Assembly (NCBI GenBank): GCA_965240325.2
Contig: OZ251244.1
Location: 868,001 to 932,000, forward strand
Reading direction: 5' to 3'
Origin: Rebecca billardiae RCC1528
Lineage: Eukaryota > Protista > Haptophyta
DNA length: 64,000 bases
The position numbers and the translations under genes were made by a program. Below the pieces are notes generated by a model, which saw nothing but the letters and a program-made list of their open reading frames with translations, ran no database searches and was not told the origin of the DNA. Shown one piece after another: positions 9,182 to 15,563 of this stretch (position 1 is the stretch's first letter; each line of letters opens with the position of its first letter).

Positions 9182-9435
9182 TGCTGTCCCCCGTCCTGCA
9201 GGTCTGTCAGCAGGAACAATGGTCAATGCAGATCGAACGCTGATGAGCACAGTATTCATGTAAACTTTGCCTGTATTGTATATCATGTTGACGAGTCGTT
9301 GACGAACGGTTGACGAACTTGTTACTTGAGGCAGGAATCAAGGTCATCAACCGAGATGCTGCCGCAGTGAGCCAAACAGTGGAACAAGGGATTTCCGGAC
9401 GGCTCGTGGATGCGCAGGGCGCGCGCGCTGGCACC

Positions 9436-11482
9436 ATGACGGCGCAGCAGGCAAGGCAGGATTACATCGACCTGTGCAAGACGGCCAAGTTCGTCGCGAC
9501 CAAGGGCGCCAACGTGCAAGCCGGGTACGAGAGCCTGCAGCAGGTCTCCGCCTGCAAGCTCAGCTTGGAGTGCGATCGCGGCGCACACCTTGGCGGCGGC
9601 AAGACGCGCAGGCTGCTGACGGGCTTCGCCGAGGGAGAGCCACTGGGCGCGGCCTCGATCGTGCTCAAAGACGACCTCGACCTCGACGACTCCGAGCTCG
9701 AGAGCTGGAGGGCCGCCTTCTGGGAGTACGGCTGCCACACGGCTCACGGCCACCTCGTCCTGACGGTCACCATCCGCAACTTCTCGCACTGGGCCAAGTC
9801 CAAGGCCTGCCGGGATGAGGTGCGGGGTGTGAAGCCGGGCCGGCTCTTCGTGTACCTCGAGCACCCGCCCCTCGACACCTTCACGCACCCGGGCCGCGGC
9901 TTCATCGTCGCACTGGACGCGCAGAGCAACAGAGCGTCCACGACCGTCGATGACGGGTACGGGTACCTGTTCTATTACGAGGGCTCGTGGTACGAGGGGG
10001 AGATCCAGGTGCGGCCCGGCGTGAGGGGGAGCCGTCTCGCGAGTGCGTCCGGGCCGGCGCTCGCGCCGCGAGTCGCGCGTGCTGCTGGCCCGCAGCCCCC
10101 CATCTCCCCACCCGCTGGCTCCCACCCACTCCCTACTCACTTGGCGCACGCGTGCGCATGCATGCGCACATCATCTCGTATCTCTCAGGATGGCGTCAAA
10201 CACGGCCAGGGCACGCTTACCTGGGCAGACGGCGCCGTGTACGCGGGCAAGTGGGAGGTGCGCCCACGTGCGCCGGGCGCGCGCAGGCGCCGCGCACGCG
10301 CACGGACGACGGAGCCGCTCCGCCCAGCCGGCTGCCCCCGGGAGCGCGTGCTGACGCTGAGAACCTCGCCATCCGCCCTCCTCCTCCATCCGCCCTCCTC
10401 CTCCCGCCCGGGCGTATTACCTGCTTCCCTGCTCGGGGCCGGCGCGTGCACGACAGGCTGGCAAGAAGCATGGTAGCGGCACGTACATCTGGGCAAATGG
10501 TGACAAGTACGCGGGCGAGTACAAGGTGCGCCCCATGCTTGGCGGCCGCGCGCAGGCGCTGGCGGGCAGCGCACGCGGAGTGGCGCCATCACTCTGCGCT
10601 CGAGCGGCTGACGCACGCCTGCACCCCGCGCGGCCTCTCGCCTCGCCGCCCTGCCGTGCGCCGACCACAGGACGGCGCCCACCACGGCCGGGGCACGTAC
10701 ACCTGGGCAGATGGCCGGAAGTACGTAGGCGACTTTCAGGTGAGTCCACTTCTGGCGAGTGCGTGCGCGAAGCGCAGGGCGGCGTGACGTCGAGCGCCCT
10801 GACTGAGCGCGTCCCATGCGCATCACGGTGCGCTCGTCACAGCAAAACAAGAAGCACGGCCTAGGCAAGCTGTACTACGCAGATGGCTCCAAGTACGTGG
10901 GGGAGTACAAGGTGCGCCCTCGCACACCCGTCGCAAGCGCGCGCGGCGGCGCGCCAGCAACTGGCGGCGCGCCATCCAGTCCCACCGCGTGCAGTGCGCT
11001 GACTGACCGGCGTGCGCGCGCGGCGAACACCGCAGGACGACAAGAAGCACGGCCAGGGTATGTTCGTCTCGCCTGATGGCAGCACGCAGGCAGGCGAGTG
11101 GGAGGTGCGCGGCGCGCGTGCGCACGCGCACTGCGTGTCGATCGAGCGCAACCCGAGCGCATGTCGAGCGGATGGCTGCTGAGAGCACGAGCGCCTTTGC
11201 TCCCCTGACTGATTCGTGCGCATTGCTGCTGATACGCCGTGCTGCGACCGCTCCACCATGCGCCCGCCGATGGCACAGGAAGGCAAGTATGTCGTCACGA
11301 AGTATCAGCCGGCAGGAACCAATGCTGAGCAGCCGCAAATGGCGATTGCTGCTGATGTCGCGGCCGTGGGCGCCACGCCCACGACTGCGGAGCAAGCGAC
11401 GACCATGCCGCGTGCGAAGGCGACGACTGGTGCGAGCACGCCGACGACGCCGACTACGATTGTCATCACGACGACAGTGTAG
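9436..11482 (+). CDS. MORN-repeat protein (~373 aa); exons 9436-10008, 10189-10257, 10457-10525, 10671-10739, 10843-10911, 11036-11104, 11279-11482
   Basis: Repeats of the type DGxKHGxGTYTWADGxxYxGE(W/Y/F)x. All six introns are GT-AG and phase 0. Start codon is tentative. Confidence 0.85.
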
Positions 11483-12739: not shown

Positions 12740-14697
12740 TCAGGTGAGCATCGTCATCATCGGGTGGTGGCGAGCGTCGGTGGCCCCGGCCACCGGCTTG
12801 GCGCCGCCGGCCTGGAAGTGGATGTTGGGGACGACGGCGGCGGCCGAGCCGGCGCCGGCGGGCGCGCCGCCCTCGATGCGCACGTGCGCGTCCGGCTTGC
12901 TCGCCGCGAGCGCGGTCAGGTACGCGGTCAGGTCGACGCCGAGCTTGTTGAGCGCGGCGTAGCGCTGCTCGTCCTGCTCGCGCGCGGCGCGCGCCACGTC
13001 GACGCGGATCGCCGCCTGCTCGCGCGCGGCGCGCGTCTCCTCCTCGTGCTCCGCGCGCCGGTGCGCGAGCTGCGCCTGCAGCCGCTCGCCCTCCTGCCGC
13101 AGCGCGGTCGCGTGCTCTGCGTCGGCGAGCTCGGACGCCTGCGCCTGCGCGAGCTTCTCGAGCGCGAGCTTGTGCCGCGCCTCCGCCTCCTTGAGCTCGA
13201 GCTCCTGCTTGGAGCGCTCCTGCCGGCAGCGCAGCTCCATCGCGCGCTTCTCCTGCTCCTCCCGCGCCTGGTCCGCCTCGAGCCGCATGCGCGTGCGGCG
13301 CGTGACCGCCTCGTCGTGCATCTCCTGCAGCTGCGCCGAGGTCGAGTACCCGCGGTACACCACCTTGAGCAGCCGGCAGCCGACCTGCGCCATGCGCGCG
13401 GCGAGGATGGGGAACGAGTCGAGGCTGGAGAGCTGCGCCGAGTGCTGCAGCAGCAGCTCGTAGCTCTGCCCCGCGGCGAAGGTGATCACGTCCGCGCTCG
13501 TCGCTGAGCACATGTCGCCGATCAGGTCGTTGGTCGCGTCGAGCATCGTCTCGATCTGCGCGAGCTCGTAGAAGAGCATCAGGTGCACCGTGATCGACGC
13601 GTCGTCGAGGGTGCGCACGTCGCGGACGGAGAAGTACATCTGGTCGGGCATCTTGCGCAGCGTCTGGAAATTGAGCGCGTGCGGCACCTTCACGTCGCCC
13701 GCGTACCCGGTCTTGGAGCCCTTGCCGTCGCGCGACACCGAGCCGTGCCACGAGAACGTGTGCAGCCTGACGGCAGAGTCAAATCGTCGGGCGGGCGGGG
13801 GCGAGGGCGCGGCTCGTCACCGCGCGCGCGCGCGCTGGGCCGCCGGCCACGGCGTCGGGCGCGCGCGCGCGCGCACCACTCGTTCGCCTCGGGCATGAAG
13901 AGGGCGGGGCCGTGCACGACGCGGCGCTGCACGCGCAGCGCGCCCGCCTGCACGATCGCGCCGCCGTGCTCCGAGCTGTCAGCGTCGGCGGCGCCGGCGG
14001 CGTCAACCGCCGCCGGCGCGTCCGCCGCCGGCTTGGCCTCGAGCGCGCCCACCTCGCAGTCGAGGCGCGCCCACACCGCCGCCGCGCTCGTCAGCTGCCG
14101 GCGGTACACGACCACCGCCTCGTTCGCCGCGAGGCGCACGGCGTCGTGCACGGCGACCGCCTCGTGTTCAAACGCGTTGAACTGCAGCTCGGCGGGGCCG
14201 CGCACGTGCTCCTTGCGCCCGTCGCGGTGCGTGACGACGAGGTACTGCTGGGGCTCGGCGACGTACCGCTCGATCGGCTGCACCTGCATGCGCTCGTGCA
14301 AGTTGGGGTCGAGCACGAGCTCGCACGGGCCGTCGCGCAGCTCGACCTCGCCCGAGCGGTACTGCACGAGGATGCGCTGGTTGGCGTTCGCGACGTGCCG
14401 CGGGATCGGGAGGGTCTGCACGGTCGCGTGCTGGAACGGGTCGCGCGTCACGGTACACGGGCCGTGGCGCCGCTCCGTGCGGCCGTCGCGGAAGACCACC
14501 TCGACGAGCTCGGTCTCGCGCGCGACCACGCGCTCGTGCGGCTTCACCTCGATCAGCCGGTGCGCCAGCGCCTTCCGGCGTAGGTGCGCAGGGCCCGGGA
14601 GGAGCGCGGTGCGGCCGTCGACATGGTGCACGAGCAGGAAGTGATCCTCGTCCGCGCAGTACCGCTCGCCGAGGAAGCAGTCGAGAGCGCGCAGCAT
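12740..14697 (-). CDS. Major vault protein-like / SPFH-shoulder protein (~615 aa); exons 14697-13877, 13766-12740
   Basis: Five ~44-aa repeats (xLVxxRDGRxExxxGP), then RVVHGPALFMPEANEW-LHTFSW...KVPHAL...PDQMYFSVRDVRTLDDASITVHL, resembling the MVP last-repeat/shoulder junction, then a long E/R/Q/A coiled coil. One 110-nt GT-AG intron. Confidence 0.7.
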
Positions 14698-15563
14698 GGG
14701 AGGCGCGCGCGTGGGCGTTGGGTGGGCGCGCGCAGTTCGGGCGGTCGACCGGCCGTCGTCGGGTGTCAGCGGCGGACTTGTCCGGGTTTAGGCGTTAGCG
14801 CTTCCAGTGGCGAGTTTAGCCGTTGCCCAGGCCAGTAAGTAGTTGGTTAGTAGCAGGCCCTTGGTAGTACAAAGTTGAGCGCAGCGCGTGCGCAAGCTCT
14901 CACGGACTGTCGACACTGTCTTGAGTCATGGGGGCGGCAGCTACGGTAACTAAAATCCACTACGAGTCTGCACGCCCCGGGGGACCTACTGCTGAGGGCG
15001 CCGAGTTGACGCGCGACATCGACAACGGCCGGCGCGGCCCCGCTGCCGTCCTGCGCAACCCCCGAGCAGCGCGCTACCGTCGATCGACGAATCTCGACAG
15101 ACGCTGATTATTATTCGGCAGATCGAGCCGCGGCAGCACCAGCGCAGAGCCGGCTCGCGACGGTCAGTGACTGTGAGTGTGAGAGCCCGTGCTTGCCGCT
15201 TAATTAAGCCTAAGCTTAGGGCGCTACTAAGTTACCTACTAGCGGACCGCTCGTACTCGAGTACAGCGGCGTCGCCGCGTTGTTGCTCACGCGATCGCGG
15301 ATAATTGCCGATACGACATGACGAGTGGCTGCTAAGCACGCTCGGTGGCAGCGGAACTCGATCTGCAAATGCGGCGGATGACGAGCGGTCCCCGCGCCCG
15401 CGGACCGCACGCTTCGGCTTAGACGCAGCCCGGGCAACTGCTGATGGCTAGGCCAATGGCAAAGCTACCAGTGCTGAGGGCACCCTGACTCTGAGTCTGA
15501 GCGTCGATGACCTAATATAAGTTATTTTTACCGTCGAATGTCGTCGATCATGGGCGCGCGCGC

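Follow-up and report, generated by a model that had tools for sequence, protein, structure and literature searches.

A compact protein related to the major vault protein in the haptophyte Rebecca billardiae

Introduction

What vaults do in the cell has been an open question since 1986. An obstacle to answering it is that the canonical major vault protein (MVP) forms a huge 78-mer and is restricted to organisms in which genetic phenotypes are weak. In MVP from rat, human and rabbit (PDB 4V60, 4HL8, 7PKZ, 9BW5 and 9Z4W), nine repeats of ~53–55 residues are followed by an SPFH-like shoulder and a long cap helix, giving a chain of ~860–890 residues. The chains form half-vaults of 39-fold symmetry and 78-mer particles; their partners are PARP4, TEP1 and vault RNA. 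Here, we describe a gene from the haptophyte Rebecca billardiae RCC1528 with a product that is very probably a remote homologue of MVP and has the same order of parts in 615 residues. It lies on the minus strand at positions 12740–14697 of the stretch analysed, 64,000 nucleotides of contig OZ251244.1 (positions 868,001–932,000; assembly GCA_965240325.2), referred to below as the window.

MVP homologues of reduced length have been described before. A list of bacterial and ciliate "putative MVPs" appeared in 2013 (Daly et al., PMC3762200), bacterial MVPs were discussed later (Sokolskyi, 2019; bioRxiv 10.1101/872010), and phage MVPs have been reported in a preprint (10.1101/2023.11.10.566534). 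Similar in plan, and a precedent for a short MVP, are the homologues from Asgard archaea, described as having five repeats, a shoulder and a cap helix and modelled as a closed ten-subunit cup; in the published tree, half of these five-repeat proteins group with eukaryotic MVPs (Nat Microbiol 2026, PMC12962969). An SPFH-fold shoulder followed by a long helix is also found in the cages formed by SPFH/Band 7 proteins (flotillin, stomatin, prohibitin, erlin, HflK/C and QmcA), which have no wall of tandem repeats.

The window protein departs from canonical MVP in several respects. It has five repeats built on a 44-residue unit, it carries an N-terminal Cys motif, it has no match to Pfam Vault or MVP_shoulder, and its identity to MVP in structural alignments is ~16%. 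Five repeats, shoulder and cap helix are shared with the Asgard proteins, a comparison made by description; the parts of that account that set out the architecture mention neither a membrane-anchor motif nor an NAD (nicotinamide adenine dinucleotide) operon context (PMC12962969). With SPFH/Band 7 proteins it shares the shoulder and the helix that follows and, by analogy, possibly also attachment to a membrane at the rim. The bacterial and phage homologues have MVP shoulder and repeat domains, and the ESM Atlas neighbours of the closest named relative of the window protein (P0001, see below) include phage and bacterial clusters with MVP_shoulder and Vault_3. However, the published bacterial and phage MVPs were recognised by BLAST or Pfam, whereas members of the family described here mostly have no Pfam, NCBIfam, PADLOC or PHROG assignment. 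The window protein is best placed in an unnamed MVP-like family, here called mini-MVP, that bridges Band 7 (SPFH) proteins and MVP. New here are the compact 44-residue repeat, a haptophyte-type clade with lipidation-type N-termini, a family invisible to curated libraries, and a bacterial context of operons linked to NrtR.

Gene structure and repeats

The gene appears in the window as two minus-strand open reading frames (ORFs) in different frames, 13690–14697 (335 residues) and 12740–13738 (332 residues). Removal of a 110-nucleotide intron, with GT at 13876–13875 and AG at 13768–13767, joins the two into 615 codons and a stop without internal stops; the shift in frame requires an intron length of 2 modulo 3. 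The spliced junction reads ...FMPEANE-W-LHTFSWHGS..., and the splice was accepted because all full-length relatives compared (e.g. P0001, P0002 and P0004–P0006) read straight through this stretch. The start codon (ATG, 14697–14695) agrees with the starts of three complete homologues (P0006, P0157 and P0003), and an in-frame stop is found 90 nucleotides upstream of it, at 14790–14788. The guanine-plus-cytosine (GC) content near the gene is ~0.69, similar to its surroundings. Most of the intron is an imperfect (CG)n microsatellite of 27.5 copies (13821–13874). The parts of the gene and its product are listed here with the evidence for each; R1–R5 denote the repeats, HMM stands for hidden Markov model and pLDDT for predicted local distance difference test.

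13877..14697, minus strand: coding exon 1, residues 1–273 and two bases of codon 274 (ORF, frame and homologue starts)
13767..13876, minus strand: intron of 110 nucleotides, GT..AG, very GC-rich, with a (CG)n run (sequence, frame and uninterrupted E-W-L in homologues)
12740..13766, minus strand: coding exon 2, last base of codon 274, residues 275–615 and the stop at 12742–12740
14665..14697, minus strand: short N-terminal helix with Cys7 (helix at residues 2–9 in the model; Cys14 is next, in R1)
14533..14664, minus strand: repeat R1, residues 12–55 (repeat HMM and register; five beta strands, pLDDT ~97)
14401..14532, minus strand: repeat R2, residues 56–99 (repeat HMM, register and model)
14269..14400, minus strand: repeat R3, residues 100–143 (repeat HMM, register and model)
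14137..14268, minus strand: repeat R4, residues 144–187 (repeat HMM, register and model)
13879..14136, minus strand: exon-1 part of R5, residues 188–273 (first strands 188–202, RRVVHGP strands 255–273)
13936–14091, minus strand: Ala-rich, low-confidence insert of R5, residues ~203–254 (pLDDT <50 in 219–246)
13661..13766, minus strand: exon-2 part of R5, residues 274–309, WLHTFSWHGS...KVPHALNF (profile alignment to the end of MVP R9)
13331..13660, minus strand: shoulder, an SPFH-like alpha/beta domain, residues 310–419 (profile alignment to MVP shoulder 521–604; homologue model)
12944..13330, minus strand: long helix equivalent to the cap helix, residues 420–548 (homologue model helix 430–560, 61% identity)
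12743..12943, minus strand: C-terminal motif GVDLTxYL...PD..I...H and disordered tail, residues 549–615 (family consensus)

R1–R4 are four tandem units with an exact period of 44 residues, as determined by a repeat HMM and by register. Compared pairwise in ungapped register, they are identical at 13–17 of 44 positions, with BLOSUM62 z-scores of 6.1–8.7 and scores reached by none of 5000 shuffles. No 132-nucleotide tandem repeat was detected in the DNA, and the repeats are therefore ancient and recognisable at the protein level only. R5 (188 to ~309) is a divergent unit that starts with RLAANEAVVVY and ends with RRVVHGPALF...EWLHTFSWHGS...KVPHALNF. It is interrupted by the Ala-rich insert of ~52 residues and split by the intron. 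In the structural models described below, its exon-1 part has strands at 187–200 and 256–267, and its exon-2 region corresponds to strands 290–319 of the homologue. The length of the insert differs between homologues, and bacterial members have none. A first-pass annotation, made from the sequence alone, had described a 615-residue protein with four clean repeats of ~44 residues and a fifth with an insertion. Length, period and insertion are all borne out by the above. The pattern that it quoted at the transition from repeats to shoulder, RVVHGP...KVPHA...PD...T.DDA, is present as well and belongs to the family's best-conserved block.

Relationship to MVP

Structural evidence comes from two AlphaFold models, one of the window exon-1 product (273 residues, 56-row alignment) and one of the full-length homologue from Diacronema lutheri, which is 60% identical to the window protein over its full length and served as a stand-in for the spliced product. 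The exon-1 model has a mean pLDDT of 87.9, rising to 97–98 in the repeats, with five beta strands per 44-residue unit and a disordered insert. A Foldseek search of the PDB gave 15 matches at E≤1e-3, every one an MVP chain. The best was R1–R7 of murine MVP (3gf5_A, E 1.5e-5), and the next match after these 15 followed at E 0.016 with a probability of 0.13. Aligned to the same murine fragment with VIA-align, the model gave Z 7.8 over 215 residues at a root-mean-square deviation (rmsd) of 6.8 Å. A single repeat (residues 55–99) can also be superposed on the beta region at the N-terminus of flotillin, erlin and prohibitin (Z 5–6, 43 residues, rmsd 2.1–2.4 Å).

The homologue model (mean pLDDT 80.8) comprises the repeats, an alpha/beta domain at ~322–431, a single helix at 430–560 and, towards the C-terminus, a short helix at 565–573 followed by residues of low pLDDT. 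In Foldseek, MVP fills its first 12 places with E-values of 6e-17 to 5e-13, and SPFH proteins begin with flotillin at E 1.9e-6. By VIA, residues 27–532 align to MVP 271–750 with Z 16.3 over ~390–430 residues, from the repeats to the cap helix, and the long helix follows the MVP cap helix up to ~residue 790. SPFH proteins match the model in the shoulder and helix only (Z 11–13.7), as illustrated by residues 322–431, which superpose on the SPFH domain of mouse stomatin with Z 13.7 and rmsd 1.9 Å over 109 residues. Between the R5 strands and the helix end, the homologue and the window protein align without a gap, with 76% identity over 255–419 (the C-terminal part of R5 and the shoulder) and 61% in the helix (418–548). 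A plain flotillin/SPFH protein was considered and rejected, given that the repeats match MVP and that Foldseek E-values favour MVP over SPFH proteins by ten orders of magnitude.

Sequence profiles add to the two models a third independent line of evidence, and all three lead to MVP and to no other family. The full-length family profile matches MVP and no other protein in the PDB (E 1.8e-5). A core profile of the last two repeats and the shoulder, searched to E 10, retrieves six distinct sequences, all of them MVP, with the best match at E 4.5e-7 aligned to rat MVP 349–604, a stretch that takes in the later repeats and the shoulder. Neither exon product had a match in NCBIfam, PADLOC or PHROGs. 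Within the family, among 81 long members at E≤0.01, Vault_3 is matched by five, MVP_shoulder by two and Band_7 by 21. The Band_7 matches are weak (best 1.7e-6), and one member of 809 residues (P0025) exceeds the Pfam gathering score for Vault_3 with 44.1 bits against 28.8. MVP_shoulder gives only 0.18 for the Diacronema protein. The first-pass annotation had read the protein as MVP-related and as intermediate between SPFH domes and vaults, and had proposed a comparison with both kinds of structure. The kinship agrees with the core-profile matches, and the comparison places MVP first for both models and far above flotillin. The five-stranded units predicted for the repeats, with every exon-1 match at E≤1e-3 an MVP chain, speak for the MVP repeat fold. 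The intermediate position fits a family in which 21 of 81 members have weak Band_7 matches and five match Vault_3, one of them above the gathering score.

Family and phylogeny

A profile search over 1.84 billion cluster representatives returned 1410 family members at E≤1e-3, 332 of them at E≤1e-30; a word-indexed search gave 23 homologues. The closest named relative is KFE25_003967 of the pavlovophyte haptophyte Diacronema lutheri. When each bacterial and archaeal species was represented by one genome, relatives were found in 211 contig stretches, chiefly from Planctomycetota, Verrucomicrobiota and Myxococcota. A FastTree phylogeny of 218 core regions places the window protein beside the Diacronema protein in an algal clade of eight rows (support 99). 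This clade is nested in a eukaryote-type clade of 30 rows (support 99), and the nearest bacterial rows are of the NrtR-linked type. Bacterial contamination or a very recent transfer was rejected on account of the spliceosomal-type intron, the GC content like that of the surroundings and the size of the eukaryote-type clade. The core of the window protein (143–438) scores 361.9 bits against the family core HMM, which covers the last A-type repeat, the B-type repeat and the shoulder (HMM positions 2–239 matched), and has its conserved blocks EW.H.FSWH, VRT.DDA and LQ.MH.

The family is variable outside this core. Bacterial forms of ~400 residues have one A-type and one B-type repeat; planctomycete forms of ~600 residues have an N-terminal MshEN domain; myxobacterial forms of ~500–580 residues have other N-terminal extensions; and algal forms have three or four A-type repeats and one of B-type. 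AT-rich forms of 660–810 residues have up to five alternating A/B pairs with a spacing of ~85–90 residues. Fusion of the core to MshEN, a domain of the type that binds cyclic di-GMP (c-di-GMP), was seen in P0011, P0014–P0018, P0020 and P0030, and at loci including L036, L044 and L051–L053. The AT-rich long forms (P0025, P0028, P0032, P0042, P0047, P0054 and P0066) are metagenomic and have basic, Ser-rich N-termini that resemble targeting presequences. In the ESM Atlas, the neighbours of the Diacronema homologue are clusters automatically named Band 7, MVP-repeat or shoulder-domain, drawn from haptophytes, diatoms, rotifers, molluscs, bacteria and phages. Ranked by features, the first neighbour is a cluster of 463 members of ~404 residues, named "Band 7 domain-containing" and labelled 67% Eukaryota, with Mollusca the commonest entry; the label may reflect either a genuine short form in animals or associated bacteria.

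Bacterial operons for NAD and ADP-ribose

The short bacterial forms have a characteristic genomic setting. All five ~400-residue members inspected (loci L001, L004, L010, L011 and L012) are encoded directly downstream of an NrtR-type regulator, composed of NUDIX and WHD_NrtR, and most of these loci also have an isochorismatase of the nicotinamidase type. Genes in the same-strand clusters variously encode ADP-ribosylglycohydrolases (ARH; ADP, adenosine diphosphate), macro, PARG, NADAR, NUDIX, KptA/Tpt1, PnuC, a NadR-like kinase, NAD synthase, NAPRTase and NAD kinase. For a count, the best 80 species-representative loci (L013–L092, among them those of Adhaeretor mobilis HG15A2 and Poriferisphaera sp. 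WC338, L013 and L057) were examined by tblastn; the loci come from bacterial genomes and metagenomes. A locus was counted only if its upstream flank was sufficient, and NrtR was scored within 6 kb. At the 50 loci without an MshEN fusion, NrtR was present at 31, isochorismatase at 29 and ARH, macro or PARG at 24. At the 21 loci with the fusion, the count was zero for each of the three. Human MVP houses PARP4, and a pocket in its shoulder was recently shown to accommodate NAD+, ADP-ribose and ADP (PMC12280208). PDB entries 9mxj and 9mxv are among the structural matches of the homologue model. The parallel between NAD+ binding by human MVP and the bacterial NAD operons is suggestive, and indirect. 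In the literature library searched, no paper has both NrtR and "major vault protein".

Discussion

Our preferred explanation, which we consider reasonably probable, is that the window protein is a compact and distant MVP homologue that forms a cup docked on a membrane. Copies of the protein would pack laterally through their repeats and shoulders, and their long helices would bundle into a closed cap. We infer this packing and the helical cap because the solved proteins with a shoulder or SPFH domain and a long helix among the fold matches (MVP, flotillin, HflK/C, erlin, prohibitin and stomatin) all form large rings or cages. By this analogy, the chances that the algal protein assembles into a cage or cup appear about even. 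The wall of the resulting cup would consist of five repeats and be about half as tall as a half-vault, and acyl chains would hold it to a membrane with the rim down, in the manner of flotillin domes. The superposition of a single repeat on SPFH proteins described above hints that MVP-type repeats and the N-terminal sheet of SPFH proteins may share an origin.

The orientation of the proposed cup follows from its N-terminus. In work by Tanaka and colleagues from 2009, the N-terminus of MVP is reportedly located at the open rim. In the algal clade, eight of nine complete N-termini have one or two Cys within approximately the first ten residues, and one starts with MGC. MGxxxS-type motifs open the sequences of 12 alignment members, including at least five from the eukaryote-type clade. 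A sister eukaryotic group of 450–500 residues (P0057, P0060, P0072, P0075 and P0079) has MGxxxS or MGC starts, of the N-myristoylation/palmitoylation type; P0075 is also present in an MMETSP transcriptome. No transmembrane segment was found in the N-terminus of the window protein. Cys7 is a possible site of S-acylation and, as such, a possible membrane anchor.

Several observations weigh against a membrane-docked MVP homologue and should be set against the evidence above. A Pfam scan of the two window ORFs at E≤0.1 gave zero matches, with Vault, MVP_shoulder and Band_7 all absent. With phmmer against the PDB, exon 1 had no match and exon 2 returned coiled-coil noise only. A shoulder profile of the eukaryote-type clade that includes window exon 2 found MVP and no other protein in the PDB, at a non-significant E of 0.41; thus, it is the last repeat combined with the shoulder that carries the statistical weight. 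The Z of 7.8 for the repeat region falls in the range that VIA regards as middling (<8). The NAD+ site of human MVP is not conserved in the family, as judged from the profile alignment, in which R511 is replaced by an invariant Leu and L517 by Arg, and R437 is in a loop that is absent here. The predicted intron is confirmed solely through homology. Finally, the N-terminal lipid anchor has the conserved Cys pattern as its only basis, and we propose it tentatively, with the balance somewhat against it.

The alternative that survives best is a free, closed mini-vault, in line with the shorter vault-like cage envisaged by the first-pass annotation. Two five-repeat cups would meet at their N-terminal rims and form a soluble particle in the cytosol, like the 78-mer vault but shorter. 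The domain order is that of MVP with its N-terminus at the rim, and the ~400-residue bacterial members, which lack an N-terminal lipid or transmembrane signal, are probably soluble. However, the algal Cys and the MGxxxS motifs of the sister clade point to membrane attachment at exactly the surface that would be used for pairing, and the five-repeat Asgard homologue is modelled solely as a single cup in the account of its structure (PMC12962969). The rim-down membrane cup is favoured over the two-cup particle because the N-terminus of MVP is at the rim and these motifs are found there, and the closed mini-vault appears unlikely.

Somewhat less likely still is that the protein is not a cage at all. 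It could be a scaffold forming small oligomers or filaments, or a ligand sensor, with the conserved shoulder block binding NAD, ADP-ribose or a related nucleotide. For a shell with a purely structural task, conservation between bacteria and algae is unusually high around EW.H.FSWH, VRT.DDA and LQ.MHD.AI..RT. The bacterial short forms are part of NrtR-linked NAD/ADP-ribose operons, and some other members carry MshEN, which binds c-di-GMP, as a fused domain. Against this, the solved relatives with shoulder and long helix all build large rings or cages, no ligand site can be mapped, and the residues of the human NAD+ pocket are not conserved. A mis-joined pair of ORFs or a frameshifted pseudogene, as two ORFs in different frames might suggest, is very improbable, since the GT-AG intron of 110 nucleotides restores the frame at the residue expected from five homologues, no internal stops are present and 41 of the 45 family positions conserved at ≥90% are intact.

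By analogy with the bacterial loci, a role related to NAD or ADP-ribose may be envisaged for the algal protein, and we consider it unlikely. More speculative, and less likely again, is the possibility that the family represents an ancient pan-domain lineage of cups linked to NAD and ADP-ribose. The bacterial ~400-residue form would then act in NrtR-controlled salvage of NAD and disposal of ADP-ribose, eukaryotic vaults would have inherited the link to PARP4 and NAD+, and acylated five-repeat domes docked on algal membranes would enclose or concentrate enzymes that consume NAD or process ADP-ribose.

The family matters for the study of vaults in several ways. It has the whole MVP plan in 400–615 residues and was missed by standard annotation. 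Its bacterial members belong to operons with a clear meaning, which makes the function of a vault-like shell addressable in culturable Planctomycetota and Verrucomicrobiota, and this operon context connects with the binding of NAD+, ADP-ribose and ADP by the shoulder of human MVP. The algal protein would link membrane-bound SPFH domes and free vaults in eukaryotes, and it would serve as a small component of engineered cages.

No NAD-related genes were found among the window ORFs neighbouring the mini-MVP gene, and Pfam identified a MORN repeat and a weak match to DUF7107 only. The MORN repeat is encoded by an ORF at 9310–10476 on the plus strand and is the sole annotated feature near the gene, with a match of 24.2 bits that is barely over the Pfam cut-off.

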